Assembly: GCA_038496445.1 (NCBI GenBank) | Contig: JALMLS010000013.1 | Location: 62,001 to 126,000, forward strand | DNA from: Trichosphaerium sp. ATCC 40318 | Taxonomy: Eukaryota > Protista > Tubulinea | Reading direction: 5' to 3' | DNA: 64,000 nucleotides | Part shown: piece by piece, positions 409 through 52,529 of the stretch | How the letters are laid out: each line of letters opens with the position of its first letter | Position numbering within the stretch: the stretch's first letter is position 1 | The notes under the pieces: generated by a model | The model's database searches: none | Told to the model about the DNA's origin: nothing | What the model saw: only the letters and a program-made list of their open reading frames with translations | Made by a program: the position numbers and the translations under genes

Positions 409-632
409 ATATTTTATAAAAACAGATTTGACTGCAAAATATCAAGTTGTCAACGTAAGATTTTTTGGGACATTTGCTTCATTCTGTTTAGTTAATAGAT
501 AATCTCTCAAGTAACATTATCATGCAGATCATTTCAAGTACAGAAAAGACTACTTGAGGCATTATTTGGGGTGCAAAGAAGTGCAATACTCGAAGAAAAT
601 AAAAAGCTTGTAAGATTAATCATTTAGTTTGT

Positions 633-2061: not shown

Positions 2062-2976
2062 GCTCACTATGAAAATACTGTTGAAATGATGCTTATTTGT
2101 TCAGAGTTAAACAAACAAGAAAGTCGAAGAAAACGAAATAGGTTAATGTCCAGGAAGTACATTCATTGATCTCCTTAAAACGAAATATCTTTCTGAAACG
2201 TGGGCTACATCAGACCTTTGTAGTTGCGCACACCATCATTATGTAGTACAATTAAAGTCTATTCACTTGTGAAACCACGTGATTTGGTTTTTTTCAACAC
2301 TTTCGAACGGACGAGTTTTTGTGTTAGGAAGCTAAAACCTTGACAGTTTGCAAAAAAATAGACAAGGAGCAACTTTAAGCACTCGGTTAGCTAAATGAGT
2401 TTAAGATATTGAGATAACAATTTTCTTATTTGAAAAACCAATTTCAAAGTAACACGTGGTAGCTTTCTACGTCGACGACTCGAACAAAAAACGACGTTAC
2501 CAACTTTAGCTTCGAATAATCATGGTTGCAAGCGGGGTTGTTTGAGTGCGCTAACTAACTACATTTGTGATGCTCTGATACAAAAAAAAACAAAGTTGAT
2601 AGCTGTACACGACATTGTGTTATTCTTTGTTTGCACAGTTGAGAGAAAAATACAACAATCCAATCTTAACTCAAAACCGCTGTATGTAGTTTACGCTGAA
2701 GCCTATCTAGCAAACCTACAGAAGGCAGTAATAAACTAAAGTACATACGTGCTACACCATCAAAAAAACCGCAATCCTTCAAAGTTACACTGTACAGCAA
2801 GCCACAAGCTTTAGACAGCGAAAATAGTTGATTTCTGTCCTCAGAATTCTGTTTTCATAATGCTCTTGTTAACAAGACCAAAAAGTTAACAATCTTTGGT
2901 TTTTCAGTGAAATGACAAAAACCGAAACCAAAAACAGAAACATAACAAATAAACAACACTAAACACACAACACATC

Positions 2977-4598
2977 ATGTATTTCTGGGGAAGCGGTAAT
3001 AAAAACGTAGTATCAAGAGTACAAGGCCTTACAAACGATTCACGCGCAAGACAAATTGCTGGTACGTTCGATATCGTTAATTAACGCTATTTAAAGTACT
3101 TACATTGCGGTTGTAGGAAAATATGGTCTTTCTATCACAAATGTTACTTATGAAGACAACGGACGCTTTAAAAACAGTTGTTGGGGTCCATGCATCAGCG
3201 ACATGACTTTACAAGGTAAGTATTGCAACCGACTCTTTTTTCTTAAAACCACTCCTAACTCGTTTAAAACTAGTTGACGGTTCTCGTTTACCTGTAATTC
3301 GATCACCAAACTTCGAAGATTTGACTTGGGACGTTCCTATGGAGAAAATTCCTCTTGTCGTCGGAAACGAAAAAGGACAACCTTTGAGGACGATTGCCTT
3401 GTCTGAGTATTTACAGAACTATGAATACTACCTCTCAAACACCAACTCATATCGAAGTGGTTCTCTTTACAACGCATCACGTGACTCACATGTGATCATG
3501 TCGGCTCAAGCGTGCATGCTTCCAATTTCCAAAAATAACGAAACAAAATTCAACGTATGCTTGTTCAATTATCAAAGCACAGCAAGCGATCCTGCTGTAC
3601 TCGTTATAGTAGCAAACGCAAAAGGAACATCCGCTCAAGTAGTAGATGGTAACTATCAGGTACGAACAAAGCTTTTCAAGCAAGAACAAGATCTTTCAGT
3701 GCGAACGACGATGTTTGACTGACACTTTTTTTTACAGGGTCAAAAATTATTCTTTAACAAAAACGGATCAAGATGCTCTTTTGTTGGACAACGATTAAGC
3801 GATAATAGAAGAGAAAGAGGTGTAAGAGATAGAGGACAACCAATGACACAACAAGAGAAACAAGAAAACGTTATTCTTGTTATTCAAGTCCCTCTTAAAA
3901 AGAAAAGACCTGTTGCGTCTTATCCACCTCCTCCTGGATCATTTTACTCTATGGAGTGCAACGACATGTCATTTGGTGGTGGTATGAACTGTGTTCCGCA
4001 ATCGGCACCAATGAAGAAGAAGTGTAGAAAACGTGGTAGTAACGTCGAAAACGCAATTGTCAAAGTTGGTAGATCAGAAGGACACTTCAGTGAGTTAAAT
4101 GGTACGTTCAAGGAACTTTGGTTTTTCTTTTTTTTTGTTTTCTAGTGTTGAGACTTACTCTTGTTTTCAGGACTTTCTATTGAACGTGATACTCGATTCC
4201 CAGTCCGTGTCACATTACAGTACTATAAAGGAACAGATAATGGCGTTGTTAATGACTCTGTTATGTCTGAAATCTCACAACAACTACGACAAGCAAGAAA
4301 GTACGCTGATAATATTGGATCTTTAGTCGTTGGAGGATACACCAACCGTCCTACCGAACATCACGTTCCAAATCCTGCGCCATACAGCGTATGCCCTGCG
4401 CCAATATGGTGGGAAGACTTCTGGTGCATGTACGGTAGCACTTATCCGCAATGGACGAAGGAAGCTGCAAGACAACGTCTCTTTCATGGAGGTAGATACA
4501 TTAATTCATCAATGACTCAAGTCAGAGATCAAATGTTAGATTTACTTGGAAAAGACGAAATGCAAAAAGACGCTGCAACGTGGAATGTTGTATGGTAA
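2977..4598 (+). CDS. Hypothetical protein, 5 exons
   Basis: In-frame GT-AG splicing gives MYFWGSG..VTYEDNGRFKNSCWGPCISDMTLQ..SAQACMLP..ERDTRFPVRVTLQYY..WNVVW*. Function not recognised. Confidence 0.75.
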
Positions 4599-32326: not shown

Positions 32327-33156
32327 AAATTATTAAATATTTGCGTTAAGTTACCCAAAGGCCAACCCGACATATTATGTTAAATACCCTAACCCACACA
32401 AACTTAGATATGTAATAGAAGCTTGTAAGTATCCATTAAGATAAAGGCCCAACAGACCGTGACTTAAATACCCGAGACATAAATAGCTACCCAAAATAGT
32501 TGTCGGGCTCATACATTACAGAAGCTTGTAAAACACCTCGGTGTAACCAAAAATGGAAAACGGGCAACAGTTCATTGATAAACAGCTCAGTATGGCTTCA
32601 GTATTATGTAGACAAGTCAAAGTACACAAATGCTGCTTTCAACTGTTCGCTAGTTATTGTACTAGCGCTTTGTTTGGTAAGTTTATGGCGATATGCTTGC
32701 AGTATTTACAAAGTATCACGTGAAATTCTCGTTGACAGATACATAAGAAAAGATTACACTTCGGGTCGTGCGTAATATTTATTGACTTAAAAAACGGGCA
32801 TTTGTTCAAGAAAATCTTCCGCTTACTTGCGTTATGTTCGAAAAAGTAAAGAAAAACAAACAAGGTTATAAATATATTACAAGATTTTATTTTGTTTCTC
32901 CTTTTTTTGTTGTTTTTACAGACGTCATTCCCTTTTTTTTTTTTTTTTTTTTTTGTCCCCAATAGTAAGTTACACCCACAAAGTCCGTAAAAAATCCAAA
33001 AAAGAGAATACAAAAAGGTTTCATAGGATCAAAGATTTTTGAATGGATTATTCATCATCCAACCAAAAATAAGAGCCACAAGTAAATTGTATAAGGTCTT
33101 GTGGCTTGGGCGTTAAAAAACCAGGAAGGACCCAAACTTGGTTTTTTTTTTTTTTT

Positions 33157-35671
33157 TCAGACGCCTTTCCGGTCTTGATCTTTGTATTCATGTCCACCTC
33201 CTCCGTTCTTTCGTACTTGTTGCTCATACTCTTCCCTATCATAAGCCCCAATTACTTCATATGTATTACCTCCTTCAAAGTCAAGGTTTGGAGCATAGGC
33301 GTTGTTGTAAGGGTCTGTGAAATTCTCGCCATACATTTGAGCATAAAAGTTCGTAGATTGTACGGCCTGTACAGGGTACGCTGGATAAGTGCTCGGATAA
33401 GGGGCTGCAGTCCTGATATTTTGGTTAACTTCAAAACTAAGCGTAAAACTTCAACCAAAAAATCACGTGATATTTTTTCAAACATAATAACGTTAATCGG
33501 TATACATGGATTTATAAAATAAAAGGTTTCGCGCCATTAGAAGAATTCTGTTTTGAATTGTGAGTTTTTTTGCTGTGAATTATTTGGCAAAAAAACGCAA
33601 AAAAAATAAAAAAAAATCTCATTCATTTTTGTTGTGTAGGTTTTATACTCCCAATAGTTATTGATACACAAAAACGACGTAGTCAAGGAGATCCGGACTA
33701 TGACCGTGAGCCGTTCACACATTTTATGCGTTTGTTAATTAACGCTAATTAACTTTTTTTTTGTGCTTTCAAAAACGCTTTAAAGCGACCGTGTGAATAT
33801 CTTTGGAACGTACCATGCGTAGTTAGTGTATCCGTAAGGTACAGGATAATGAGGTGACCATACCCAAGACGGCGAAAAGTACGTTGCAGGCACTTGGTAT
33901 GGCTGTGGTTGGTTGTTTGGAGATTCTGGTCTTCCGGTGTTATGTGCAGGGCTAGAAGGTGGTGTATTGTTTGAGGACTTACGGGGTTCTGCTCTCTTTA
34001 CTTCAACCTACATCATGTTTAGTAATAATACGCGAACAAAACGCTAAAGAACAAAGTTTTGTTCGTTAATTAAAGAAAAAGTCCACATTTTGGTTAAAGG
34101 CGTTTTCAGAAATTTACAAAAGACCACTGTTGGCGCTAGTAAACATGTAGGTTCAAGTAAGTTTTTTGTAAAGTAATTTTCCTAGCTTACCCTTTTACCG
34201 TTAATTTGATGAGAGTGGTGGCTCAGTACTAAGCTGACTGTATCCTCCTCCTTGAACGTTACAAAACCGAAACCTCTAGATCTTCCGGTAAGTTTGTCTC
34301 GCATCAGTTGCGACCCAACTAACACCCCAAACTGCTTAAAATATTCTCTAAATTGATCTAGGACTATCAGCGCTAATGCACAGGCAAAAGTCAACCGTCT
34401 AGCGGCTCTTAAAAAGTCCCAAAATACGTCTTAGGGAAAAACTTGATAATTTTTTGAGTTTTGCCCGTTTTGTGCTTTGAAATCACGTGAGGGACTTCCT
34501 CTTTTTTATTAAACTGAAGAGGTGGCCCACCACATGAAACAAATTAGTAGCGCCTTGAATTTATATAGAAAAAGCGTGTTTTAACGTAAGGGTAATTGAT
34601 AGGGCAAACAGGTTATAACGTGATAAAAAGTGGTTTGGGTTTTTTTACTTGTATTGTTCAAGTAGAAGAACTATTTTTTTCTCGTCTACAATACTAAATA
34701 AATGACGTACCATCATCACAGTCGTTTGGTATACCCCCTACGAATATTTTGGTAGTATTATCAGGCATGTTCGCCTTAGGTATGGCTCTCTTGGCCTCAA
34801 CCTTTTTAAAGTTAGTATAAAGCCAAGAACTTAGTTTACAAAACGATGGCGATGCAATATGGTCACGTGGAAGGAACCTTTATAAAAATATTTTTCAATT
34901 AAAAAGAAACCACGTCGTTGTGCTGAAAACTTACTCGCCTTGGGTACAAGATCACCCAAAATTGCATAAAAACAAGATAAAAGAACCAAAAACAAAAAAA
35001 AAAAAAGAAACTTCCAACTTTTTACGCGATACCGGTGAGTTAATTAAAAGACTCTTTGACGCACCCGAGACCCTAAAATCTGATGTACATCTCCCACAGC
35101 TCGATTGGCGCTGCCGAGGTCTTTAAATGTGACAAACCCAAAACCACGGCTACGACCGGAGTCTCTATCACGCATAATAATAGCGTCTAGAATGACACCA
35201 TATTTTTCAAAATACTCTTTTAAAATCTCTAAACATGTGATTAGATCATATATATCACGTGAGTATTATAAAAATAACGTTACAAAAATAAATAAGCGAG
35301 ACACAAAGGCGTTTTGTTTTCCTCTTTTTTTTTTTTCAGCTTTAAATTAACTTGTTTTACCTGCTGTTGTAGACCAAGTTAGTCCTCCAACAAATATCTT
35401 TGCGCTAGTAGTTGTAAATTAATAAGGCTATGTGGCACTGTGTAGCAAAAAAAAGTTGTTTAATTAACTACCGAACTAAAACCGTTTTTTTGTTGTTTAT
35501 CCACAACGTAGTTTTACAAATCACGTGTTCATTAGTACTTTAAGAAACACTACGAAAATAATGCTTTCACATTCGTTTTAAGACGTACCTTGGGTCTCCT
35601 TCTACTGGTGGTAGTGTATTCTTTCCGGTTAACAAGTTATCTCCTTGAGGTATCTCCATTGTTGCAAGCAT
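33157..35671 (-). CDS. Two-RRM RNA-binding protein (hnRNP A/B, Musashi/DAZAP1-like)
   Basis: KIFVGGLTWST, RDRLRS.SRGFGFVTF (RNP1), VEAKRAIP, KIFVGGI, RSRGFGFVTFKEE, VEVKRAEPR, Tyr/Pro-rich tail. Confidence 0.9.
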
Positions 35672-37467
35672 TTGGGACAACAAAAAATAATCAAAAAAAC
35701 TACACTTTAGTCAAACCCAATAATGTGAATTTAAAAGTTCACCATTGAATTCTTGCGCATTGTTTTTTAATTAACCTATCATTGATAGTCTCAAAACAAA
35801 CGTACTTGTATTATTAGAGGGTTCACGATAGGGCACGGCACCTTGGAAGTAAAAAATCACCTTAAACAGCCCTTGAACAATGTGTTTATCAACGCAACGA
35901 AGTTAACGGAGCTAATTTATAAGTGATTGATCATTGAAACAGAAACTTAACGAACTTTCTTATTCGGGGCCTTGTGATATATAGCCAGTCCACACGGAGA
36001 TTGATACGAGTGAAAAATACTCAATCTCGTTGGTTCGCTAGAATAAGACAATAGAGAATCACTGCACTGCAGTTAACTCTGTTTAATACGAACATAAGAA
36101 AGATTATACATACACTCTGCCAGTGAAGATCAAACAAGCTTGTGGCTGTCGCGTCGATCGTGATTTCTAAAGGCGTTTCACGTGCTCTTGTGTTATTTTC
36201 TACACAAACACGTTGGCATGGCTAAAAAATGTCTCTGTAGGTGTAATTATATGCCATGTCCCTTCTAACTAAAGATTCCCGAAGCTTTTTGATGCTGACT
36301 TTAAAAAATCCCAAAGCAGATAGATTTTTGTCGCTGGCCTCTTTAAGTGCGCCATACGCACTCCAAAAGCCTCAGGTAGCCAAACATAGATGGTTTACGC
36401 GTATACAAGCAACAAAGACGACTGGTAGATAGTTTTAAGAGCCAACGCATTGTTTGAACTCCCTATCGATCTAGTACAACGCCAACATGTATATACGGAC
36501 AGAATGCGTTGACTTGAATGATGTTTTAAGCAATACAACTCGCTACATTTGAGTTTACAAAATCAACGTGTCGTTAATGGTCAAATTCTCTGCTTGTATT
36601 GGTTATCACGTGCTCTTTTGTAGCTAATTCATGTACGGTTGTAAGCGTGTACCTCTCAAACCTAAAACTAGGTTCCGTAACATATCAGGCTGAACGTCGA
36701 AAGGTTACGCTCCACACGTTGTTTGCGCAGTGGCCTCGTTTCGCTTACTTAGATCTCCGTTTGTGAGAAAAAAAATTGGGACACTTTACCTGATTTGGGA
36801 CTTTTCATTTTTGACTAATTCTTCTGTCTACGCTTATGTTCTTAGAGTAAGTGTTCCGTTGAAATTTTTTGAAACAACCTCCTACATCGACCACGTGTTG
36901 GACCTTTTTTTTAAACAACATTTATTTTATTATTTTCACTCATACTAATTTCGACGAAAATAATCATTGTGAACTTTGACGAAATACACAAATGTAGTGT
37001 GAATGATCACAACGTATGTCACTACAATAAATTACACTATTACCCTACAACTAAGGCCACGTCTCTTACACGTATTCTCATCTTTTTTGTGTCCTTTAAC
37101 GTTTCACTTGTACCTAATTTAGTTATGTAAATACGTTAGAGCAAAAGGCCGACTCTGTTCAATTTATATGTGCTAAGCTATGGCTTGCATAGAAAATCAA
37201 TGTAAACTTCAGCGAATATTGTTTCATATGAAAGTCATTGAATGCACCTTTTTTATATTGAAACTCCATCAACGCACCTCAGCAATGTTTACCAACGTAA
37301 TTTACGTACTACAACGATACTTTTACATTATATATCGTGTTTTGACAAGTGTTTTATCGCCTTACTTTACATCCAACTCCACACGTGTCCGACAATTTAA
37401 ACCGACTAAAAAACGAAAACAAAAAAGAAAAAAAAGAAGAAGAACAAAAACTAAGAGAGTCTATAAC

Positions 37468-38092
37468 ATGTCTTCTGAAGAACCAGCAGAAGATATTATT
37501 AATAGATTCGTATCAAGCAAGATCAATCAAAAAGTTGCTGAGCGACACAGAGAAAGTGATGAGTACGTTTGTTGTCATTTTTTTAATGTACCAATTCTTA
37601 TCCTCTACCTCAGAAGCATTGTCGAATATCTACCTCCGGAAGTGCTCCGGTGCTTATATGATATTGCTAAAGAAGACAAAGTCTTAAAGACTCAGTTCTC
37701 GGTTATCAATTATGAGTTTGCTGTAGCTTCTAGCTTTGTTGGTATCCAGTACAGAGTATTGTGACGGAAATCTTCAAGGATTATGCGAAGTGTTTAGTGA
37801 GCAAACTGGAAAAATGATATCTAGGAAAACGTACAAAGATGGTAAGTTAGACGGATTACAAGAACAGTTTAGTAAGAATACAGGAATGATTGTGTCACGT
37901 GAGGAGATTAAACACCAAAGAACGAACGGAATAAGAATACGTTGGTATAAAGATACTACACAAATGTCAGAACGTGGCACTTATGTGTACGGACAGAAAC
38001 ATGGCGTATTTGAGAGGTGGAATATTTGTGGTGGTAAGACAGAGAGTACACTTTATTCTAAGGGTGAGTGGATGGGAGAACTTATTGCTTGA
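37468..38092 (+). CDS. MORN-variant (MORN_2 / YwqK-like) repeat protein with F-box-like N-terminal motif
   Basis: TYKDGKLDG, GTYVYGQKHGVFERW repeats; EYLPPEVLRCL. Introns about 37563-37613 and 37681-37726 join the two ORFs. Confidence 0.7.
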
Positions 38093-38780
38093 GAGTTTAC
38101 CTCTAGTGTTGTACTATAAATAAAAACTAATATCACAAGGAAGTACTTAAGTAGCTTGCTATTGCTGAAAGGGAGGAATGTATCTTTACATCCAACTTTT
38201 ACTGTTGGTACTTCGTAATTGCTCTGTATGCGAACAGTCTTGGTTCAAGTGTTACTGAAAAGCAACGATCAACAGCTAAAAGAACCAAACTGGCAAAAGC
38301 CATACAAATCTATTGACCAATTCTTGTGAACAAGAGTTAGGAGGTTTTGGGCAAAAAAAAAGATTCGGATGTTCTTGGGTGATTGGATAGGCGACTTTTG
38401 GTTCACTATGGACAAACACGGAACACCTTGGAAAGCATACTCGGGCACGTTTTAACTGCTAGGTGTTGAATACAGACAACATTCGCGATAAGCTAAAATA
38501 CGCGCTAGTTTGTCTTTGGTTTAGTGAACTGTCGGGTATGATTTAGCCTCATCCTGATGACGATATTAAACGTGTTTTCGGAGGGTGGTCGTAGAGTCGT
38601 GGCGTTTCAGTCGGCTTAGTACTATCGCTTGACTTCAAGTATTACAGTGTATAGATCTATGGCTAGAATGATATGTATAGGCGTCGCATGTTGAGGGAGA
38701 TTTTGGGTTGATTTAGGAGACACAAAACTTAAAAATACGTAACAGTCCGATTATTCTTCGGTTTCTATCCCACCAGCGAC

Positions 38781-39194
38781 ATGGCTCTCTTTATAAACTG
38801 TTTTACGTATGCGATACAATTGCTGATATCGTTTTTGGATCTACTGAATCAATATGCTTTACCAACATCAGCAAATATAGAGCAACATCATAAACCGCCA
38901 AAAAAGAGGAGTAAATCAATTAAAAAGTCACGTGATCGAAACGAAGCTAAAAAAACCAAACAAGAAACAAAACATACAGTTATAGATGCTACAAGTGTTG
39001 TTAAACCCAATGTGACACGTGAGGTGTCACGTGAGGCGAGACAATCTTCAAAATCTGCTGATTCAAAAAAAGGAAAACTAAAACGTTTCTTTTTGAAGAA
39101 AAAGAAAAAACATATTGTGTTCATTGGTAAGACATCAGTTGAGGTCGCTTCACATACTTATAAATCAATTGCGAGACAAAAAAAAGGTCTGTAG
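38781..39194 (+). CDS. Basic Lys-rich orphan protein, paralog B
   Basis: Conserved blocks shared with 31760-32326. Confidence 0.7.
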   Translation: MALFINCFTYAIQLLISFLDLLNQYALPTSANIEQHHKPPKKRSKSIKKSRDRNEAKKTKQETKHTVIDATSVVKPNVTREVSREARQSSKSADSKKGKLKRFFLKKKKKHIVFIGKTSVEVASHTYKSIARQKKGL

Positions 39195-39795
39195 AATTCG
39201 ACTATGATTGTAACAAATAAACACCACATTGTACAGTATCAGGTTTGTCTTCATTGGCTAATTAATAAAACCTAGTGCTAGCTCTTAGCATATAATTTTA
39301 CATTGCGTTAAGAGACAGAACTTGGCACCACAGTAATTGTTTAATCAATGGCCAAAGATTAACAATAGTATACCATCAATGACACACTGCAATTGAAGTT
39401 GTCGACACTGATGTTAGTATGTCAGTAGTATTAAAGGTTTCTGGAGCAAGTGTACACTTGGAGATGCATTTCAGTTTTCGTTAGCATTAAAGTTGCCTGT
39501 CGTGGCCAGAGCGCTGTCAATGCGTCTAGAGCCCAGATATGATTAAAAGGGATGGTAGGAAATTGGATGCTTGGTCTGCCCTCACGCTTGGCTAGAGAAT
39601 CCAACCGTTTCGAACCCACGTGATTAACAAAACAGCAAAAAAAATTATTTATATTTTGACACGCGGCAGCGTTTACAAAGCCTACAGCATCACTGGCGGT
39701 GTTTTTGGGGTTTAACGTTATTACCCCTGTATTGCTGGTTGGATACTACCAGAGTGCTGGTGTTAGCGTGGGGTAAGCGCTAGCATAGAGCTGTA

Positions 39796-40141
39796 ACGTA
39801 GATTTTTTGAAGCAAAATACAGCAAACAGTGTTTGAGGCATTCATACGTGATTAACGGTAATGTGATAGCTTTGCAGCAGGGATAATACCTTTTTAATTC
39901 GATTTTAGCTTATTGAACACTTCTGTGGTTTGACCGCACCGTGTACAGTGCGTAGGTAAAATACTGCGATCATCTGCCAAGGTCTATTGAAACTGACATT
40001 GAAAATTTTGTTATCACTTACGTTCCAGGTTAGTCTTGCTATGAATAGGATAGTCACACAAATAGTTCACATTTTTATGGATCTATTTGAACTCTGCTAA
40101 AAGTGCTAGAAAATATAAACAACACTTGAATGAGACGGACA
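39796..40141 (+). repeat. Dispersed repeat, copy 2 (homologous to 17-408)
   Basis: Long near-identical blocks; ends CTTGAATGAGACGGACA. Confidence 0.85.
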
Positions 40142-40473
40142 CTAGTTTCATATTCGAGCAACCAACTCCATGAAATATGTGTTTGCTGGTAAGGGGTCAG
40201 TCGAGTCATCGGGAAAACTTCGGAAAAACTCTCTGGTTAACAAACGTTATGTGAATTTTCCTTTTCTTTCAAATGACCGCCCTCGGCTTTGATTACCAGC
40301 TCTATAACATCGTGATATACCGTGTTAAGTGTATCACAACACTTAAGCCAATTTTTTTTAGCCATAACACATTCATCAAACGTGCTTTATACCTTATTAC
40401 CGGTACATCTCACAATATAGTGATGCTGTATCTTACCTTACTACAGGTCTCCATCTGGTAAAAATCTAACAGA

Positions 40474-40845
40474 ATGAACCTTTACTTAGCTACTCTACTC
40501 GTAATCATTGCAGCATGTGCCAGCTCCTCATGGGGATCATGTGCTTTCGACTGGGGTTCTCGTGTGTTTGAAGTTGCGGGCGGAGACAAATACTGTGTTG
40601 AGCGCTGGGGAAGCTGTCCTCTCCCAGGCGCTAACGGCAAATGGTACTCCGACTATAAATTCAACTATAACAACAACCGCGCTGAATGTGCTGGAAAAAG
40701 CCTTGATAGTGGTACATGTAAGTGTAAGAGATGTAGAAGAAGAAAGCCAAGTGATGGCAATGGTGGAAACTTGCGCTGTAACAAAGAATTATCTGGAAGT
40801 AACATTCACTCTTGTAATGCATTAACAACGTACCGGTGTGTTTAA
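40474..40845 (+). CDS. Small secreted cysteine-rich protein, paralog B (intronless)
   Basis: Signal peptide; WGSRVFE..GG..YC..WGSCP..KCKRC..RKPS.G..RC..YRCV*. Confidence 0.85.
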   Translation: MNLYLATLLVIIAACASSSWGSCAFDWGSRVFEVAGGDKYCVERWGSCPLPGANGKWYSDYKFNYNNNRAECAGKSLDSGTCKCKRCRRRKPSDGNGGNLRCNKELSGSNIHSCNALTTYRCV

Positions 40846-41879
40846 AAATAACTCTAATACATGACTTTATCCCAATTTTGGTTTATTATTGTGAACGTAG
40901 ATGAAACTGATAAAGGGCGAGGTTTCGAAAGGTAAAACTAAAAGCTCAACACTTGTCAGTGTAAGAAAATGTTTAGCCAGAATGTAGTTTAAAAAAACAA
41001 GAAAGCGTTTTCGTTAGCGTCCAGGTCCAGTCAGTTCCATGGACGGTGTCTAAAATGTGAAAAAAAGTAGAAACAGCAAAAACATAGAAAAGTACTTCAC
41101 AAGGTACACCCAATGGTTTTCGACGCTCGCAACAGTTTTTCCGTCCTTGCAAGTGTTTTCTGACAGAAACTTGGGTGTGTTTTTCTCTTTACGGTGTTTA
41201 AACCTTTTCAACCAAATATCATCAAGTGTGGTTACTTTACTTTAGGAACTAGCTCACGCCAACACGTTCAGAGCCTTTTCCAGTGTCTTCCTCGATACAT
41301 CAGGCTCCATTGGTCTCTTTCAGAACTCCAGTATTGCCTACAATAGTACCCACAGTGCCAGAGAACATAGAAGCATCACCAGAAGCTGTGAGTATTGTCT
41401 TTGGAGAAGCATCGAGCACAGGTTCAGAAGTTTCTGAAACAACCTAGCTTTCAACATGCATATAATCAGTTCAAGAAAATAGTACCTCAATGACGTTGAC
41501 GAGATGCTACGGTTTTTTGCTTTGTTACAGATTTGTTTTTTTTGTACTGCACCTGAATCACATGTAAGTTCTGTCAACTGTCAGATCCCGTCGGATTGTC
41601 TAGGTCTGACAAAAACCTGCGAGTTCTGTAAAAAGTCACTTGTTGGCATTAACTTGACTGCCACGGACACTAAGTTTCGATGAGGACTGTTTTGCGCAAC
41701 ATGTAGGCTCTACTTTAGTACTATTAGGCCAATGATGGTCACTTGCAGGATGATTAAGATAAGACGCCAATTACTGCTGTACGCAATTTCCACTCAAGCA
41801 CCGTAAACTGTTGACAATAAATACCAGGAAATTATTTTTTTACACTCTGGACCATATTTTTATTCCACAACATTTTACT

Positions 41880-43764
41880 TCAATTTATGTTTTCTTTCTG
41901 TAAGAATAGTTGCAAGTCTTTTAATTGCTTCTTCCATATCCTAAATAGTTATATCACGTGATAAAAAGAAACAGCCAAAAATACAATTACAAAAACAAAC
42001 TGTTTGGTACCTCTTTAGATGCTGTAGAATACGCTATCCGAACACACGATGATTTGTCCCCCGATGCTGTGTAAGGTGATCCCCACCTGAGCAATACCTA
42101 AAAGCAAGTGTAAGCGTAAGCGTGAAATGAGAAGATTTTAAATGTTGAACATGTACCTTTGATGCTACTACTTCTTTGCGTACAAGCTCCTCAGTGTCTT
42201 CTACATCAGTCAATCTTAGCCATAGGAAAAATCCTCCTTTAGGAATAACCCATGTTGCTAATCCTTTGAGGTGCTTGTCACATGAGGAAATCAAAGCATC
42301 TCTCTTTGAAGTGTATATTTTTCTTATACTTTTTGAATGTTGTTCTATGCCTTCCTTTCCCCAATGTTTTAGTATTGATAACACAATCGCTTGACTGACA
42401 CCTTATAATAACAATTAATTAGAATTGCTGGATTTCATTGCAGCCATCAAATGCTATGAGCGATATTGTAGTTTCTGAACAAGAGTGTGAAATACCAATG
42501 GCGTATTTTTAACAAAAAGGTGTTTGTGATTACTGGTAAGTTTACGCTCTTGGACAGAATCCAGATAAAAGTATGTTTAAAACTTGAAGTATTTCTACAT
42601 ACCAGACGGATGAATAATGTCTCCTTGGTTCAATAACTCTATTTTATCAACCAAATACTTTGGCCCTGTAACCCACCCAAGACGAAGCCCTGGTGCTATG
42701 ATTTTACTAAAAGAGTCTAGTCTTAGAACTCTTCCTTCTGTATCCATAATTCTACGAACCAGTATGGGTCATCCTCAATTATTATTAGGTTGTGATCTGA
42801 AGCTATACTCAATAATTCTTTACGTCTTTCGTAAGGTAAAATACTTCCTGTTGGATTTTGTCCTGTAGGTACTACATAAAGAACCTAAAATCGAAAGTAA
42901 GACAACCTTCAAAGCGTACTGAGGTAAACCTTTGGTTTTTTGCTATCTCCAGGCCAATCATATAGTGTCTTCCTTAACAAATCCGGTTTAATACCATCCT
43001 CATCTATTGGTATACCATGCCAAACACATTGTTCCCGAGTAACCTTTGCTCCACTATTTATTTGGTTGATTAGGTAACTACTTTTAAATACAAGTGATCA
43101 AAGAACTTAACTAGTATAGAACCTCTGAGCATAGTATTGTGTCTCCTGTTTCAGTTAAAATCTTCAATATCTTTCCTATACCATCCTTACTTCCTATTCA
43201 AGCATGAGACTCTTTTAATCATCCGCGATATGTACCAGCAAGTGTGCAAACGTCCCAATCACCTTTAGGATTATGCAGATCTTTTTGATATTGCATGAGG
43301 TACTCTAGTAGCTCGTGAATACCTTTCTATTACAAGACTTGTTAGTGGGGTTGATAAGAAATTGAAAAAAAACATAAGATCACGTGATTTCGTAAAATAA
43401 TTTTCAATAGAAAAATGCGTACAGTTGTGGAGTAGCTTACACCTTTCGCTACCATAGGCGAAGAAACATCAATAGATTCTCCTATGTGAGGTTCAATTGA
43501 CATTACAAACGATTTTTCTTACCTGACTTTAATTTGATTGTTATACCAGTTATAGGTATTGCATTTGGTTCAGGCTGACCATTTCCAAGGCTAATCTATA
43601 AAACTTGAGGTAATAAACGAACTTAGATAAAGAACTGTTACCATATCATCGTGTGCGTTAAATACCACGTCAAGAGACCGAAGTGGGTTTGATTTTAGTG
43701 ATTTGCCTTTTGTACTTAATAGCTTTATGTAATCCGATGGACCAAGTCTCTTACTCATGCTCAT
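41880..43764 (-). pseudogene. Class I PLP aminotransferase (AADAT/KAT-II/Aro8-like) with an apparent frameshift
   Basis: ISLGNGQP, VPTGQNPTG, IIEDDPY, MDTEGRVLRLDSFSKIIAPGLRLGW, PKGGFFLW. EDDPYW and MDTEGRV are in different frames at about 42745-42762. Confidence 0.7.
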
Positions 43765-44211
43765 GAAGTGTTGTAAACGGGGCAATAAGTATTTTTGAAT
43801 CACAATAAAAACCAAGCACGGTGACACTTATGAATTTTTTGACAAAGGGCTTAAGAGTCACGTGTTAAAACGCTTGTAACAATTTCTCCTAGCAGAGGCT
43901 TTTCAAAAGATAAAGTTTCTAAAAGTTGATAAGTTGCCATGTTCGTATTTACTACCCAATCCGCTTTTAACAGTATCATGCTTTTGTTCAGTAGGTAATT
44001 GCTCTGGCGGCAATGGCATACCTTGGTATTTCTATAGCAGATGTAACAATATATACAAGCTGGTACTTCTAACCACAATCCTTGTTTAATTAGTCTTGAA
44101 TATGGATTAAACAACTGGATCCAAACAATTCGTGGTTTCCTTTTACTCATTGGCATTCAATATGGACTTCTACTGAATCTAATTTAGACCCTTAATAGTA
44201 GTATTACATCG

Positions 44212-47200
44212 TTATTTTTTGAAAGGGTTTTTCTTTAGCGAAGAACACCATGTTAAAACGTCAGGTGACCTGTCTGTAACTTGTGTATGTTTCATCGTTT
44301 TAAGACTCCTTGCATCTGCAATGTTTTCACAAAACACAACAACAGGAATATTCTTCCACCCTTTATGTCCACGTACTAACCTGTTGACAAACACGTGAGT
44401 TAAATATTAGAACTGATCCGTTCAAAACAAAATTACTTGATGAGATCATGTGCTGCTTTATCACCACCATCATTTTTTCGATATCTGTTTGTTACAATCA
44501 TAAAGTTCCTTCCCTTCAAATGAGGAGCAATTGTATCAAGCCACGACTTTAGTTCCACAGATGATGTCATGCTTATCACCTAAACCAATAATAAAATTAG
44601 ACGTTAATACACGTGACACTAAAAGACTTTTGAAGAACATACTTTGACTTTATGTTTGCTTGATTTCTCGATGACCTTTACTAATTCCTTGTTTTGAAAA
44701 GATAAGTTGTTGTCAACCCAAAGAACAAGTTTATCAGCATCACGCCACTCCACATTTTTGCTTTTCATTTGAGCGAAGACCAGCCCAGAGTTTTTATTGC
44801 TTGAAGTTGTATCAACACGCTTATAGTACACAAGGTATCGAGGTAAAATCTAGGTTAAAGTGATAAATGATTACTCTGTTGTACTAGCTGGTGTTGTACC
44901 TGATCTTTGTTGAAAATTACTATCTCGTCAGCGTCTGGCACTTCGCCAGGCTTACAAGGTGCTTGAATATCCTTGGAAATTGTACTCTTTGTAACAACAT
45001 AGTGTGAGTCATATCCCGCCTACAGCACCATTTATAAGGAACGAAAACAACGGGTAACAACATACAACTAAACCTTTACCAAGAAGCGAAGTTGAGGCAC
45101 CTTTGAAGGGATCCTCTGTAACAGGATATGGTCTACCTAGCATAACTTGTAAGAAAATAATTCTAACATTGTACTGTTACCCATCAGTATCCAAGAAATA
45201 ATCATACACTTCATATTTCCTTGTTTTTTGTTTGCTTTAGCGTACAAAGAACCTAACCAAGTACTTAGTTACCATAAAGGACGTTCTAACTATTGTACCA
45301 TATGAAGGGTATTGTGTAAAGTATATGCCATTACCTAAATAATTTTAAGGAGTAATTGAGAAGAGACGTGTACCAAAATATCCAGGATCAGTGACAGTAA
45401 TGCCCATTTTTTTCTTCTCAGCAGCTTCTAAGAAATTACTTTCTGCTATCTTGAAGCACGTATCCTACACCAGTATAGTTAAAATTCTGCAATGCTAGTT
45501 AGACTTACTTCAGAAGTACCATTGAACCCTGCAATGAGGTTGATTTGCTCATTTCCAGATACACGCATGGTGTACTGCTCCAGATGAGATAATATCCTAC
45601 CAATTCTGTCAAAAAAACTACAACAATCTGAACCCATGTGGGTTATTTTCATACCATTGCTGCCATTCCTTTTTATCCTTCTCTTGGGTTGTATTTGATC
45701 CTGGATCTTGAGAGTTGTGTTAACTTTTTAGGCACAACAATATTACATACTAGAAGGTGGTGAAATAGTATCAGCCTTTAACACTCTTTTTACAAGTTTG
45801 TTGTACATTTCTCCAAACTTTTTCTCAAGGGAAGGGTTGTAGAGCACAGTTGCCTTTGTCATCTCAAACAAAGAACTCTTCTCGTTTCCTACAAACTTGT
45901 AGAACATATCACGAATACGAAGATATTCTTCTTTGCAGTCCTAACTTTGTTAGTAGTGAGTGAAAAAAAAAAGAAAAACACCAAACCTGATGTAATTCAT
46001 TGCCAGTAAGATCAGTATATTTCAGGTTCCCTTTTTGCTTCCACAGTTTCTTAGACTTACCCATCATTGAGGATCTAGTAATATGTTATTATACTGTATA
46101 GTATTGTTTTATAATCGCACTTGATGGTGCTCCAGAGAGGATTGAGAATATCGTTCTGAAAAGGAAAGCCATGAACTAATTCTGACGGACTTATTTGAAG
46201 CCCTGTAAATTCACACTTTTTTCCATGTTTAAGCTCACGTTTTGTCAACGGCAGTATCATGCCCATTTGGGCGCCACATGGGCAAATCGGATTATCTTTG
46301 AGACCAAACTCATTGAGCTCTTTGGAGAGATTTATCTGCCTTAAATTAACAATTTGGCGCTGTATTTTTTCAAGTACCTTCCACATCTCTGGTGCAAGGC
46401 CTCTAACAACAATTGCTATACTGCCATTTTTATAATACAAGGATATCACGTTTCCATCAGGATCTTTAATAATCATAGAATTTGCAAACAACTTGTATCT
46501 GTTGTCTTTTAAACCTTGAATATAATATTAAATACAAACAACGATGAATGCTGAGTTGTGAGTGTACCTTTTAGCTTTCCTTGAAGTTCATTGAATGTGT
46601 CAGTGGTGATGCTTCTATTTTGCTTTACAAGACTGAATGCAAGCACCCTAACAGTGTTGTGAAAGGTGATACAATCTATTTCTGAATGCTTCACTTTCAC
46701 TTTCTTGATAGCCTTTTTGAATACACAATGATAAGTTGTAGTTCTTTCACCTAACATTGTTATGGCTAGTGGGTAGGGCAAAGATAAGCACCTTTCTCAG
46801 TGTGATGAACTCTCATGATTATATCTTTTGCTTTGGTATCACTGATAAACTTCTCCTTGTGGTCTTTGTCCGTAGGTGGAGGCATGTACATCATTTCAGC
46901 TTCAGGTCTCAAGCAATAAAACAAGTATCCTTCTTGACCATAGTTTTTCTATACAATCAACGTTAGTACTTGTCTAGTAGTTTACAGGACGTACAACTTC
47001 TTCATCACCTAGTTTGTAGCATATGTTCATAGATTCAATGTACAACATGATGGCATCACATTCATTGTCAGTAAGTTTTGATAGCTCTGGTATTGCTTTG
47101 ATTTTTTTAACAGCAACAGCATGACTAACGATTGCCGTTCGATGTGTCAATAAGCTTGTTGTGTTTCCATGTACTCTTTGTATATGTTCTTGTGGACCAA

Positions 47201-49322
47201 TAAAACTTGCAATGACACGTGCAATAGTTTGTGGTCTCAAACACACCGTTTGTGTTGCCTAGAGAAGGAATCAATTTATTCAAGCTAGGCATGGGCGTGT
47301 AACAGCTAGCCGGTTAACCCGTAAGATATTTTGTGGCCGTATAAGCCCGAACCACCTCTACAGTGTAAAAAAACACCATAAAGGGTTGTTGTGGTACCTT
47401 ATTGTATGTTATCTTTCCCAGAGAATGTAAATACTCGATTCCATCCATTAGGTTGTGGAACACATCAGGTGAAAACCCAGAATAAACGTTGTACTTGAAC
47501 TTCTGTTCAAGTAATGGTATTATAGTACTCTTTTTTCCCTTCAATAATATAAACATGTCATCTCTAGAATGCGTTTATAAGCACCAAGTGCAACAAAAGG
47601 AAAGAAAATTATGAGAAAAATGAAAGGTATGAAAAACTCGTACACTGTCCACAATACTTGTGATGAATCAAATATGCTTGTTTCTTCTATTAGATATGTA
47701 AATTGTACTTGTGATTCAATGGACCACGTTGTTGTTGAGCTTATACACGTTGATAGTATTTTCCTGAACTTATCAACACTTTTATCTGAATAGTTGAAAC
47801 AACTGAATTAGTAGAGTTTACAACAGTAACCAGTCAGTGTACACTTACTAGATAACGATGACATGACCATATCCTTGCTGAATGTAACTTCAATCTTATT
47901 CTTAGGCGCTTTGGATATATGATCACTCAATTGTTTGTTTATGTTGGCCACAATATCATCTAGAGTATTTTCTGGATCTCGAACAAGATCAAGTTTGTTT
48001 CCGACAACTATCAAATGACGTTTTTGCCTTGAATACAACAATCCCTTGGAACCAAGAACATCAAGCCAATGACAAATATGTTGTGTTTGTATACTCAAAT
48101 TAGTTGACACATCAATCTCATTTAACAAGTTAGTTACAATGAACAACAAACGCAGTAAATGTTGGAAATACCATAATAATATAAATAGAATTTCTGTCAG
48201 AAAAGAAAGACTTGTGACTTGTTAAATACTCCATCTGACCTCCAAAGTCATATGCAATACAATCTACATTCTTAACTAAATTCAATTGTCGCGTACTCAA
48301 AGATATAGTGGATTTTGTTACACCTTTTGATCGCTGTTGTTCAACTTTGTTTAGCAAAGTCGTTTTCCCTGTTAAGAAGTTAAAAGAGATAGCATTCGCC
48401 AAGTACTGGTACCTGATCCACCGTGTCCGAGTATAAGTAGTTTTACTCCGCACTTATATACGTGGCGCACTCTCTTTGATCCGACATAATTCACACAAGC
48501 ATCAAACACCTCACTTATATGTTCCGTCCATAGTATATCCAGTGAACACTCCCAGTAATCAAAGGCACTGATATCATTAGCAAGTAGGCTTCCTTTGTTT
48601 ACGTTGATTAATAAACTATCATGTGATAAACAAGGTACCTTGTTCAAAAGTAATATGTTCTGAACCACTGATTCCCAGGGCTGTATCTTTTTGACTAGCG
48701 GAACGTGAGTTGTTTGAGTCATCTCTAAGTTCTATTTGACTGCCAACCAACAAATAAGGTGTGTATGGAGCAAACTGTCTTAGTTCTGGCAACCACTAAT
48801 AGTTACTAAATAAGCACCCAAAATCAATCACTTCAATAAAGGCCTGTACCTTATCTTTTACAGAATGAAAGCTCTCATGGTCAACAACAGAGAAAATAAG
48901 AATGAAGACATCAGCCAACTTGAAAGAGTTTGTTTTAGTTGTAGCTTTCAACAAAATAAAGAAAACCACGTGGTTACACATACTGGGTAATATAAATGTC
49001 TTTCTGGATCTGATTCATCTGTATTCTTAAATCAAAAGTAAGTTCAAAAGGTTTGTAACCAATGTGTAGTACTAGTATCGCCAATTCTGTTTTCCCTGCT
49101 AGTATATAATGTGTCTCTACAGTTAGTTAACAAAAAGTTAAAGTCACGTGCACCACGTGCGCCCAAAGATAAAAAAGAGCAGAATAAATAAAAATAAAAA
49201 GCACCTTCTTTGCTAATGCTTTTACGTTGATATATCTCGCGGTGTCTTGCTTCGAATGATTTGATGAGCTTTTTCTTTAACTCATCTTTACCAACAAGTT
49301 TAATAACTGGGAATTCCGCCAT
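44212..49322 (-). CDS. Atypical Roco protein: Rho-like pseudoGTPase + Roc + COR + PARP-like ADP-ribosyltransferase + receiver-like domain
   Basis: ADVFILIFSVVDHESF, WLPELRQFAP (Rho-like); GHGGSGKTT, DFGGQ, GNKLD (Roc); VCLRPQTIARV (COR); FNGT, DPGYFGNGIYFT, DEIVIF..QILPRYLV (ART); LVLWVDNN..IPVVVF. Confidence 0.8.
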
Positions 49323-49796
49323 TGGAGAAGGCGCACACTTACAATCTTTAACGATTAGGGTAAAACACGCGTTTCAAACTGACGAGCTACAAATATTTGA
49401 GTTTTGTTGCTTGATATGGCTTTTACGTTGTATTATTGCGCATGCAAGCGCTAGATTACAAAAGGGTTCCTCTACAGGATAAAAAAAATATATTACCTTC
49501 AAATACAGTCCTTTAGCATGTAAGAGCTTAGAATGTTTGTAATAGAGTTCCAACAAGAAAATAGCGCCATTTGATATTTCTACATTTCAGCTTTTGATGT
49601 TGTCACAGCTGGTCAAATAGCATTCATTGAAATAAAAGACAACACTTGATAGTATTGTGGTATACACTCCTAAGATGCTATTTGGTACAAGTTCATTGTA
49701 CATAATTACTAGTACTTTAATTTCAAATGGACACTGGGCATGGTTATGTGTAATCGTGTTTTTATTGTTATGGTACATTTTTTTGGTTTAAGGCTT

Positions 49797-51846
49797 CTAA
49801 AAATGAAGGCCGAATATCCCTATGTTCAAAAGGGATTTACCGATTTTGGAAGAAGTATAAGTAAATGATTTGTTAGGTCCACGTGTGAACTGAAATGCAT
49901 CATTAGGAAAAAGTTGAGATTGATCAGAAGATGCAACAGGCAAGAAAGTATTTACACCTTTGACATTCATTGTCGTTGATAGAGACACTGAACTAAATAC
50001 AACAGATGAACTCAATTCATTAGTTTTACCAAAACAATCTCTATCATGTCCTCTATAATAATAAAACAGTCAATAACTTAATGATTCATCAAAGACGTAA
50101 GACTCCACTTTTGTTGAAAAAAATAAGAAAAAAGTAAGTACTTTTTTTGGCAAACAAGAAAAGAGCAAGCTACTGTTTTCAGTATGCCTAATTCTCCATC
50201 TAGTATTGCTAGTATGTATCTTTGATTATCTGTAACACCAGGAAGCCTTTGTAGAGGTTATTAAGGATGATAAAACAAGAAGAGCTTACTTTACTTTGTA
50301 CTCTAATGAGCACGTAGTGTTGCCTTGTGTTATCGTAACTGAACCTTCCGCGATCTCAGAAGTATTGATTTCTATCGAATTGAACTTGTCTAAAATAAGA
50401 ATAAGCTCTTTGTTCCGCTTTTCGAAAAAAGGTAAAACCGGTACCCAACTTGACACCAGTAGCGAGCTCAAGCACTTTTTCCTGGTACTCTACTACTTTA
50501 ACGTTGTTTGCTGGTACTTCTGCGATCATGAGTTTAGACTGGCCTTTCCCTGATGGATTGAAGAAAGTCTGCAAAACCGTTGAACTGCTATAAATACCAG
50601 ATCCAGAATTAAACCTGAAATAGTACATTAATTTGTGAGTTTGACATAGTACGATCCTTACCAACTATGCCCAGAGCCTGAAGCTAGAAGATTGACATCT
50701 CTGAATAATGAAAAAGCGCTTTGGACCTACCATATATAAGTACAACTCAAAACAAACTAGTTTTTTGAGTAACTTTGAGCTGCAATATTCAACTTACTTG
50801 TGTTGCTGTTAAAGCGGGCGGCGTATTGACCCACCACGCTGAGTAAGTAAAGTCTGTAATACCCAAACTTATGAGATCAAGTAGTGGGTGCTCAAACATT
50901 ATATCAAAGCATATACTCATACCAAAGCGAACACCTTTTGCCAAAAAATTGTTAACAACAAATACAAACAATTTCTTCATCAACACAAAAAGCGTACCGA
51001 AATCTGTATCAAAATACTTTGGTGATTGATTTACTGGTGTATCGAACTGAGGTTCAAACCATAAGTGCGTTTTATGGTATTTTTGAAGAATAGTGCCTTT
51101 GTTTGAAAAAGCAACTTGGGTATTAAACTGATACCGCCCATCATGTGGACAGTTTACATCATTTGATGAACTACAGTATTGTACATCCCCCATATCAAGC
51201 ACAATGTATATACCAACATCTCTAGCTATACAACTAGCTTTGAAAAGCGTAGGAGAAGATTTCTACAAAAAAACGGAAAAACAATTAGCAATAAATCATA
51301 ATCAGTCACGTGCTAAGCCAAAATAAAAAAAAATGACGATTGACATGAGTACTCAAGTATGTCGCTGATTTTACGATGAGTATGAGGTACGCTGGCGCCA
51401 CGGTGGATAACAAAAAGCTACGCACTTGTTTTGAAATATCATTTGACCATTCTGTGCATGGTGTCACTGTAGTGTCCGGTATCGCTTCTAGAAACGGTAA
51501 AATGCTGTCCCTAGTATTTAAATTAGCAATTGGGGCTATTTACAACTCACCTGGTAGGGAATAGAGGTCCATATAGACCATCCTCTGGAAATACAATTAT
51601 TTCAGCTCCAGATGCTTTCGCTGTACAAGCGAAGTCCTATACACGCGTAAACAGGCATCGCTTTGTAATAACTACTTGATACAGTGCCAAGTTCTTCAAC
51701 ATCGCCGTAGAGGCATCTAACTTGCTTGTTGTATTATATGGGGGTAAAATGGGGCTATACTCAACCACAGCGGCCTTGTATCCATTATGGCCTAACACAA
51801 TGGCGGCAAATACAAACAATAGGACTCTTACTGCCAAATGGAACAT
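49797..51846 (-). CDS. Vanin/biotinidase family (pantetheinase-like) secreted amidohydrolase
   Basis: Signal peptide, YKAAVVEY, IIVFPEDGL (Glu), YHKTHL (Lys), ICFDIMF (Cys), plus C-terminal base domain. Confidence 0.9.
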
Positions 51847-52529
51847 TACGACAGCATTACCTGACACTCGAGAGATTTTTTTGAACTTCGCACTTTCTCG
51901 GTCTTTAAAGGTCTTAGTCCGGACGCAAAACGACCCATTGGCGCAATGTCACTGAAGAGGAAGAGGGTAGATGATCATGGAAAGGATAAACGAGTAAGAA
52001 TTTTGCAGCTTGTGACAGTTTTCTTACATTTGTAGGCCAAAATTGAGTATATTCCGCTCGGAAAAGGAGATGTAGGGCCAAACTTAGGTAATATACGTTT
52101 GTTAAAGCAATTATTCACAATTTGTTAGTGGCATTTCACCAAGGATTGCCTGAGGCAGATCTAGCAGCACGTAGGCCAATAAAAACAAATTTGTAAATAA
52201 TGGACTTGATAGGCACAATAGAGTTCAGGCCAGGGTCTAAGGATGCTTTAATCGCCGAAACTGAACAAATGAAGTTCACAGGAAAAGTTAGCGCTGATAA
52301 ATCAAGAATAACAACAAAGTACGCATCAAAATACCTCCAAAACGCCTAAAAACATCTCAACGTTTCCAAAAACGCATAAAACGGCAATCTGTTAAAAAGT
52401 AGGAAAACGCAGTGATAACTCTTATTTTATCGCAATTACCCTCACAAACGACTCATTAGATACTACATTGGCGTATACGATGCAGAAACAAAGCAATTAA
52501 AAATAATACCAACAAAAGGCATACACAAG

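Follow-up and report, generated by a model that had tools for sequence, protein, structure and literature searches.

A Roco-type gene of Trichosphaerium with a degenerate Rho domain ahead of Roc and a PARP-family domain behind it

Background

Roco proteins, in which a Ras-like GTPase domain, Roc (Ras of complex), is embedded in a large multidomain chain, owe most of the attention they receive to LRRK2, a cause of Parkinson's disease, and the way in which the Roc-COR unit controls an output domain is still debated. In the cases studied so far that output is, to our knowledge, a kinase, or else no enzyme is present. Here we describe a gene of this general plan from Trichosphaerium sp. ATCC 40318, found on the minus strand at positions 49322 to 44212 of a 64,000-nucleotide stretch of the genome (assembly GCA_038496445.1, contig JALMLS010000013.1, positions 62,001 to 126,000; hereafter the window, whose own numbering is used throughout). 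As in LRRK2, LRRK1, Dictyostelium Roco4 and GbpC, and the Roco proteins of C. tepidum and M. barkeri, a Ras-like Roc (DFGGQ, NKxD) lies within a large multidomain protein, with a region of several hundred residues in the place of COR, an N-terminal module in the position of the interaction modules of Roco proteins, and an output domain at the C terminus. The gene departs from those proteins at both ends: its output is a PARP-family domain with a receiver-like tail behind it, not a kinase, and a dead Rho domain takes the place of LRR or ankyrin repeats. Its COR is assigned from position and resemblance. We think it fairly probable that this is an intact, selected Roco-type gene in which Roc and the COR-like region control a PARP-like module and the pseudo-Rho domain serves as an input surface.

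A search of full-text literature that paired Roco, Roc-COR or Ras of complex with PARP or ADP-ribosyltransferase returned no description of such a protein. A 2019 review of Roco proteins, which sorts them into three groups by topology, none of them with a member of this kind, never mentions PARP (PMC6337361), and PARP and GTPase are both absent from the paper on the Trichosphaerium genome (PMC10521059). A preliminary description of the locus, drawn up from the letters of the window, had quoted a series of motifs for it, all of which we find by direct reading on the minus strand and at the positions given there; it had also stated that the output is not a kinase, and none is present. Its authors did not recognise the architecture, and although no paper appears to describe the combination, it is not unique: the layout was found in many unnamed sequences, at about 43 loci of this genome and among metagenomic relatives.

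Results and Discussion

Gene model and selection

Assembled manually on the basis of GT-AG sites, reading phase and intron size, the gene model comprises 26 exons with a coding sequence of 3702 nt, encoding 1233 amino acids and a stop. It starts at an ATG at 49322, opening MAEFPVIKLVGKDELKKKLI, and ends with a stop codon at 44214-44212 on the minus strand, where all the long stop-free frames within 44212-49322 are also found. Phases are consistent throughout, there is no in-frame stop, and every intron is GT-AG, with sizes from 39 to 139 nt and a mode of about 46 nt. Introns are thus very short and much alike in length: 20 of the 25 fall within 39-58 nt, and seven of these are exactly 46 nt.

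Two of the joins that define the architecture are independent of how the gene is spliced. Exon 6, lying in a stop-free frame from 48731 to 48375, encodes both the C-terminal helix of the Rho domain (AFDYWECS...EVFDACV) and the first beta strand and P-loop of Roc (KLLILGHGGS), and exon 24 holds the final PARP strand (ILPRYLVYYKRV) together with LVLWVDNN, the strand with which the tail opens. Because each join falls inside a single exon, the Rho-Roc and PARP-tail fusions are free of any splice assumption. Elsewhere the model is matched by its relatives: the exons of three paralogs, designated C399, C37 and C186, are colinear with exons 4-26, all of them matched in order, and the junctions of exons 18-26 are gap-free on P0004, a contiguous, transcript-derived paralog protein. 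Placing the start of exon 21 at 45252, which makes the preceding intron 46 nt long, adds the residues GSLYAK, including the second PARP tyrosine, and the added GSLYA corresponds to a G.(K/L)YAE motif conserved across all paralogs. The database searches reported below were run with single exons, exon profiles or stop-free frames.

The assembly contains a second haplotype of the locus, contig C403 (26.4 kb), which runs colinear with window positions 32423-52157 at an identity that fluctuates between 96% and 99.5% along 20 kb; we considered whether it might be a separate paralog and rejected this, the colinearity marking it as a haplotig. Between the two alleles of the gene the exons diverge by 1.54% with 0 indels, the introns by 3.2% with 15 gap columns, and none of the 50 splice dinucleotides is lost. 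At the codon level there are 38 silent and 16 replacement differences. Since silent changes outnumber replacements, no exon carries an indel and the splice sites are kept, the gene is under purifying selection. The ratio of replacement to silent changes is 1:13 in the PARP-like domain, the most constrained part of the gene, 2:11 in the tail, 8:11 in the COR-like region, 1:2 in Roc and 4:1 in the pseudo-Rho domain. The C-terminal half is clearly constrained. The pseudo-Rho domain is relaxed or fast-evolving, its 4:1 differing from the 12:37 of the remainder (Fisher p=0.023), on small numbers that include just 5 changes in the pseudo-Rho domain.

These data bear directly on the possibility that the locus is decaying or mis-modelled, either a pseudogene or an artefact in which a Rho-like gene has been fused in error to a neighbouring Roco gene, which we regard as very improbable and as largely refuted. 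Such a reading could point out that RNA was looked for and not found for this copy, that Rho has lost all its nucleotide-binding motifs, and that exon 14 has no relatives among 1.84 billion representative proteins. It has to contend with 3702 nt free of stop codons and frameshifts, with two intact haplotypes between which silent changes dominate, with a Rho C terminus and a Roc P-loop encoded in one exon, and with the repetition of the same layout in three further loci. The view that this is a single gene, put forward in the preliminary description, is upheld by the single-exon joins, by the conservation of the layout in 4 loci and by purifying selection.

The pseudo-Rho domain and Roc

The first domain (48486..49322, minus strand; approximately residues 1-180) is encoded by exon 1 (49322-49205), two mini-exons that are additional within the Rho-like domain (exons 2 and 3, 49116-49073 and 49025-48984), exons 4 and 5 (48918-48850 and 48795-48639) and the first part of exon 6 (48592-48413). 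Searched against PDB, exon 5 matches Rho-family GTPases at E-values of 7.5e-7 to 1e-4, with TC10 at 7.5e-7 and Cdc42/Rac from 7e-6, and the domain includes a segment of Rho-insert length. The nucleotide-binding motifs have been lost: a shortened P-loop, VGKDELKK, replaces GDGAVGKT at G1, NTDES stands in place of DTAGQ at G3, and SQIE in place of TKLD at G4, with Glu for Asp. The second mini-exon encodes NTDESDPERHLYYP, a decayed form of DTAGQE..YDRLRPLSYP. The domain therefore belongs to the Rho family by sequence type, as matched through exon 5, and with G1, G3 and G4 gone it is a pseudoGTPase rather than a Rho member in function, in agreement with the earlier claim of a Rho-like first domain with a replaced P-loop and no DxxG. 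Its ITFEQG and AFDYWECS align with the ITYPQG and AVKYLECS of Rac.

The paralog at C37 carries a near-canonical Rac domain in which LKLVVVGDDVEKIKT..FPFEYVPTVFDNY..LGLWDT..GQEGYDRLRPLTYP is kept and only the P-loop is altered. Switch I and switch II are decayed in the window copy and are well kept only in that paralog. Like RhoBTB, Miro, CRACR2A and CENP-M, the window gene combines a Rho-type sequence that has lost its nucleotide motifs with a second G domain in the chain; unlike those pseudoGTPase and tandem-G proteins, the dead Rho lies directly upstream of Roc, and a graded series of decay is preserved in one genome.

Roc (47849..48485, minus strand) follows after a gap of about 12 residues and occupies the end of exon 6 together with exons 7 (48368-48172) and 8 (48116-47849). 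Its motifs are all intact, G1 as GHGGS|GKTT across exons 6/7, G3 as DFGGQ in exon 7 and G4 as NKLD in exon 8, so that the second G domain is Roc-like, as had been proposed. A four-sequence profile of exon 7 matched just two chains in PDB at E<=1, 4wnr from M. barkeri (0.032) and 3dpu from C. tepidum (0.89); both matches are weak, yet specific in that both chains are Roco proteins. Exons 7 and 8 searched singly against PDB gave nothing useful. Exon 7 also shares 43% identity with the second of the G domains encoded by an environmental open reading frame (ORF), L065:126-4580, whose protein has Pfam PF08477 (Roc) on record.

The COR-like region and the cysteine module

The next region (46339..47785, minus strand), of some 430 residues, is encoded by exons 9-13 (47785-47644, 47563-47398, 47258-46995, 46948-46792 and 46750-46568) and the first ~58 residues of exon 14 (46514-46121). 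It contains IEYLHSLGKITY, VCLRPQTIARVIASFIG, EGYLFYCLRP and SIAIVVRG, which resemble sequence patterns of COR-A/COR-B. The region is colinear in about 40 paralogs and in environmental L065 and L062, and COR is not among the Pfam records of L065. Its place directly after Roc and these patterns suggest that it is COR.

The end of exon 14 (46121..46338, minus strand) encodes a cysteine module that reads PICPCG...KKCEFTG...LWSTI. The cysteine cluster reported earlier after the COR-like region is this CPCG...C motif, and its equivalents in environmental relatives are CPRC..C..C (L056) and CPFC..C..C (L065). A HMMER search with exon 14 across the 1.84 billion representatives recovered three spurious low-complexity or repeat proteins and nothing else. 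One of them, P0002, is a repeat protein of 1146 residues containing APICPCRQVQAVILPTT; the resemblance of its repeats to PICPCGAQMGMILPLT in the window looks like chance or low complexity. Exon 15 (46074-45987) lies between this module and the PARP-like domain.

The PARP-family domain and its altered triad

The domain in the output position (44814..45940, minus strand) is encoded by exons 16-18 (45940-45751, 45700-45655 and 45596-45509), exons 19-23 (45464-45374, 45334-45299, 45252-45181, 45136-45066 and 45019-44900) and the first 12 residues of exon 24 (44849-44643). It resembles a PARP-family ADP-ribosyltransferase in the motifs GIYFTQYP and ADEIVIFNKDQ|ILPRYLVYY. The position of the triad histidine is taken by Asn (FNGT, codon AAT at 45523-45521), the triad Tyr of GIYF is at 45323-45321, the second Tyr is that of GSLYA in exon 21, and the catalytic Glu of ADEIVIF, followed by ILPRYLVYY, is at 44926-44924, all on the minus strand. 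From the Asn to the Tyr there are 39 residues, from there 11 to the second Tyr and 92 to the Glu; order and spacing are as in PARPs.

Family membership was established by way of the C37 paralog. Its stop-free frame over exons 19-23 (L021:924-1463) gave a feature value of 0.95 in the ESM-Atlas search, with 194/256 shared, and 84 of 100 Atlas matches lie in PF00644; with HMMER the same frame matched P0004 at 4.7e-21 and P0005 at 1.9e-11, both of which have PF00644 on record, as does a third relative, P0007. Since the window gene is 44-91% identical to C37, exon by exon, over exons 19-23, this evidence carries over and places the window gene in PF00644. Like other PARP/ARTD proteins it shows HG[ST], GxGIYF, a second Tyr at +11, YDS, E-I-V-I/V-F and Q-x-LP-x-YL. 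Unlike them, the mono-ARTs and the triad-degenerate PARP9, PARP13/ZAP and plant RCD1/SRO included, it is fused behind Roc-COR, has Asn for His with the Glu retained, and is very divergent.

The triad varies within the family. The window gene and its allele are N-Y-E, the loci C399 and C186 are S-Y-E, and C37 and about 25 copies with MORN repeats upstream are H-Y-E, with the two Tyr and the Glu invariant in 30 loci. The window gene has neither the H-Y-E triad nor an H-Y-hydrophobic one, and we know of no N-Y-E triad among described PARPs. Because the NAD-binding His is replaced by Asn, catalysis is uncertain. An unlikely, though not negligible, alternative is that the window copy's PARP-like domain has lost ADP-ribose transfer and is a pseudo-enzyme, serving as a scaffold, as a reader of ADP-ribose or NAD, or as a regulator that pairs with intact paralogs through the COR-like region, by comparison with PARP9, PARP13/ZAP and plant RCD1/SRO, which make use of inactive PARP domains. 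The His is replaced in 3/4 pseudo-Rho genes and in 0/~25 MORN-type copies, so that its loss accompanies the decay of Rho, and inactive PARP domains with a retained function are documented (PMC9614482; bioRxiv 10.1101/2021.06.22.449398). What speaks against a pseudo-enzyme is that the domain, the most constrained of the gene (1:13), retains its two tyrosines and its catalytic Glu; given this combination, we favour a working NAD site over a decaying domain. In the diphtheria-toxin-type fold, moreover, Asn is reported to have been the sole tolerated substitute for the equivalent His (Blanke et al. 1994), which would also count against the pseudo-enzyme.

The receiver-like tail

The C-terminal region (44215..44735, minus strand), encoded by the remainder of exon 24 and by exons 25 (44579-44437) and 26 (44380-44212), reads directly as an alternation of beta strands and alpha helices. 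It contains LVLWVDNN, IVTNRYRKNDGG, IPVVVFC and VTDRSP, from which a receiver-like pattern of VDNN, TNRYRK.DGG, IPVVVFC and VTD can be drawn, and it is conserved in all paralogs and in P0004-P0007. The residue at the phospho-acceptor position (57-equivalent, at the end of beta3, in IVTNRYRK) is an Asn, at 44489-44487, and every paralog, as well as P0004, P0005 and P0007, likewise has Asn there. A search of NCBIfam for a receiver family gave no match, and P0004, P0005 and P0007 have only PF00644 on record.

A family with exchanged N-terminal modules

In the assembly of 70.3 Mb and 642 contigs, where the window corresponds to C111:62001-126000, the exon spanning the PARP/tail junction matches 43 places, all of them open and most near the full query, and exon 14 matches 45. 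Roc exon 8 and the Rho exons, by comparison, match only six places at E<=1e-3, which resolve into four loci: C111 (with haplotig C403), C399 (with a near-twin, C49, that is probably its haplotig), C186 and C37. In tblastn searches the remaining copies show a homologous Roc with identical exon borders (GHGGS|GKTT, DFAGQ, SKLD) and MORN repeats upstream, one of them, the C3 paralog, having nine repeats of the form GKGEYYWP.G.KYIGDFVD (L054:3408-4508). As the MORN-type copies share the Roc exon borders, the core has been constant and the N-terminal module has been swapped. The family is, judging from these sequences, a lineage-specific expansion of about 43 loci with a fixed core of Roc, COR-like region, cysteine module, PARP-family domain and receiver-like tail, and with a variable N terminus that appears as MORN repeats in most copies, as a Rho-derived pseudoGTPase in four loci, and as LRR or Ras plus LRR in environmental relatives.

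The four pseudo-Rho loci group as one clade in a tree built from the junction exon (support 0.99), and they can be arranged as a graded series from C37 (Rac-like, His kept) through C399 and C186 (decayed Rho, Ser) to the window gene (most decayed Rho, Asn). The codons CAT, AAT and AGT would be compatible with a path from His through Asn to Ser, and this single-exon tree is compatible with either one or two losses of the His.

P0004 (taxid 498012, Trichosphaerium sp. ATCC 40318) and P0006, both of them proteins of the MMETSP0405 transcriptome, closely match the paralog loci C3/L045 and C138/L034 at each exon that was checked. They place the PARP domain and tail of these paralogs on one mRNA and confirm the PARP-tail splicing there. 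Intron loss differs from paralog to paralog, with fusions of exons 16-18, 21-22 and 25-26 in MORN-type copies. A giant-virus origin was also considered and rejected, a scan of IMG/VR with the PARP-tail alignment having found no viral relative of this part of the protein. According to the Trichosphaerium genome paper MORN is among the commonest domains in putative giant-virus transfers (PMC10521059), a count that the ~40-member MORN-type family may inflate.

The same alignment, scanned against metagenome contigs of the JGI, recovered 27 loci. The most informative is L065 (JGI24212J29972_1014083; GC 38%), which has an uninterrupted ORF of 1485 codons at 126-4580, recorded in three samples, including JGI 3300002343 and Logan SRR5248430. 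Read directly, it begins with a Ras-like G domain (GAGGVGKS, DAAGTE), LRRs, Roc (GHGAAGKTS, DFAGQ) and a COR-like region, and continues with a Pro-rich insert, the CPFC..C..C module, a PARP-like domain (GWHG, GIYFTQF, DEIVVF) and the tail. Pfam records for it are Ras, LRR_4/8 and Roc, and those of NCBIfam two small-GTP domains and LRRs. A small GTPase ahead of Roc in a Roc-PARP protein arose at least two times, for it is Ras-type in L065 and Rho-type here. Roc and PARP are colinear on at least 7 environmental contigs, six or more besides L065 having a Roc-like match 2.5-3 kb upstream of the PARP match, and L056 contains the COR-B/CPRC module, PARP and tail within 1763 nt. GTDB genomes scanned with the Roc exon profile yielded no match. 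The L065 ORF offers an intron-free construct for expression, and it is suited to folding as well. A convergent ORF lies 26 nt downstream of it, and the host is perhaps an intron-poor eukaryote.

A proposed mechanism

We hypothesize that a GTP/GDP cycle of Roc, together with a COR-like region that dimerises in the manner of other Roco proteins, would control the C-terminal PARP-like module, so that control of PARP would stand in for the control of a kinase in LRRK2. The pseudo-Rho domain would take the position occupied in relatives by MORN or LRR repeats and serve there as an input surface for protein binding, and the tail may act as a non-phosphorylatable, receiver-like module for regulation or docking. 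We would expect the N-Y-E module to be NAD-dependent still, with a probably weaker or altered activity, be it mono-ADP-ribosyl transfer or the binding of NAD or ADP-ribose. A Roc switch wired to a PARP-type domain offers an independent natural test of how Roc-COR is coupled to its output, and the family would link GTP switching with signalling by ADP-ribosylation. The graded series, from intact-looking Rho with H-Y-E to dead Rho with N/S-Y-E, should be useful for studying how pseudo-enzymes and pseudoGTPases originate.

Several observations weigh against this proposal. RNA from this copy was looked for and not found, and the junctions at exons 2/3, 9/10, 13 and 17 are placed by splice logic only. 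COR is unproven, in that an exon-11 profile had no match in PDB and NCBIfam gave none. The NAD-binding His has given way to Asn here and, in two sister genes, to Ser, which would argue against a working NAD site and could mean that the domain is catalytically dead, and the coupling of Roc to the PARP-like module would follow purely from domain order. The preliminary description had gone further and named a PARP-fold ADP-ribosyltransferase and a CheY-like tail. For the former, the PF00644 family stands, through the paralog frame and P0004/P0005, but the fold is unconfirmed: piecewise profiles (exon 23, exon 18 and fused exons 16-18) and stop-free paralog pieces had no PARP match in PDB, and a single-sequence fold of a stop-free PARP piece, which includes intron-coded inserts, reached a predicted local distance difference test (pLDDT) score of just 35. 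The N-half PARP piece had no match in a word search and returned low-score noise only from ESM-Atlas, and NCBIfam on 18 pieces gave nothing useful. For the tail, the quoted motifs and the receiver-like pattern hold, but the acceptor Asp is Asn, and neither Foldseek nor a family search found a match; an AF2 model of a paralog tail piece (30 rows) had a pLDDT of 52 and the order b-a-a-b-a-b, and Foldseek with the tail model gave no match at E<=0.001, leaving the receiver fold unconfirmed. The two low-scoring models and the empty Foldseek search do not in themselves speak against either fold.

It is tempting to speculate further that the pseudo-Rho domain is an integrated decoy, the protein being an innate-immune sensor of effectors or toxins that target Rho, with a Roc-controlled ADP-ribosylation response, and the family a receptor repertoire; we consider this doubtful. 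Such a repertoire would look like the present family, which is large and specific to its lineage and joins an unchanging signalling core to N-terminal modules that vary (MORN, LRR, Ras and pseudo-Rho), and the concentration of allelic replacements in the pseudo-Rho domain (4:1 vs 12:37) would fit as well. In brown algae, ROCO genes count as candidates for immune receptors (PMC11378527, PMC3341825). Like the brown-algal ROCO/NB-ARC receptors and decoy-bearing plant NLRs, the present family is expanded, lineage-specific and built on a constant switch core with shuffled N-termini; unlike in the algae, the whole domain type varies here rather than LRR exons being shuffled, and the likeness is one of architecture. 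However, switch I and II, the loops that bacterial toxins target, are decayed in the window copy and kept only in C37, and the excess of replacements is equally well explained by relaxed constraint and comes from 5 changes. The broadest version, an undescribed Roco class in amoebae and uncultured eukaryotes with an ADP-ribosylation output, swapped N-terminal sensors and pseudo-Rho decoys guarding Rho GTPases, seems to us improbable as a whole. We retain as the preferred reading a Roc- and COR-controlled PARP-like module with a pseudo-Rho input surface.

Genomic neighbourhood

We looked for a tandem duplication of the gene in the window and rejected it, as there is one copy only on this contig. 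On the second haplotype a 5.7-kb insertion (C403:8719-14398), absent from the window at ~43450, lies between the 3' end of the gene and the next gene and is probably a mobile element. In the window a minus-strand ORF at 43851-44156, reading MPMSKRKPRIVW..., begins about 60 nt downstream of the gene's stop codon; with the next ORF on the same strand this near, neighbouring genes are closely packed.

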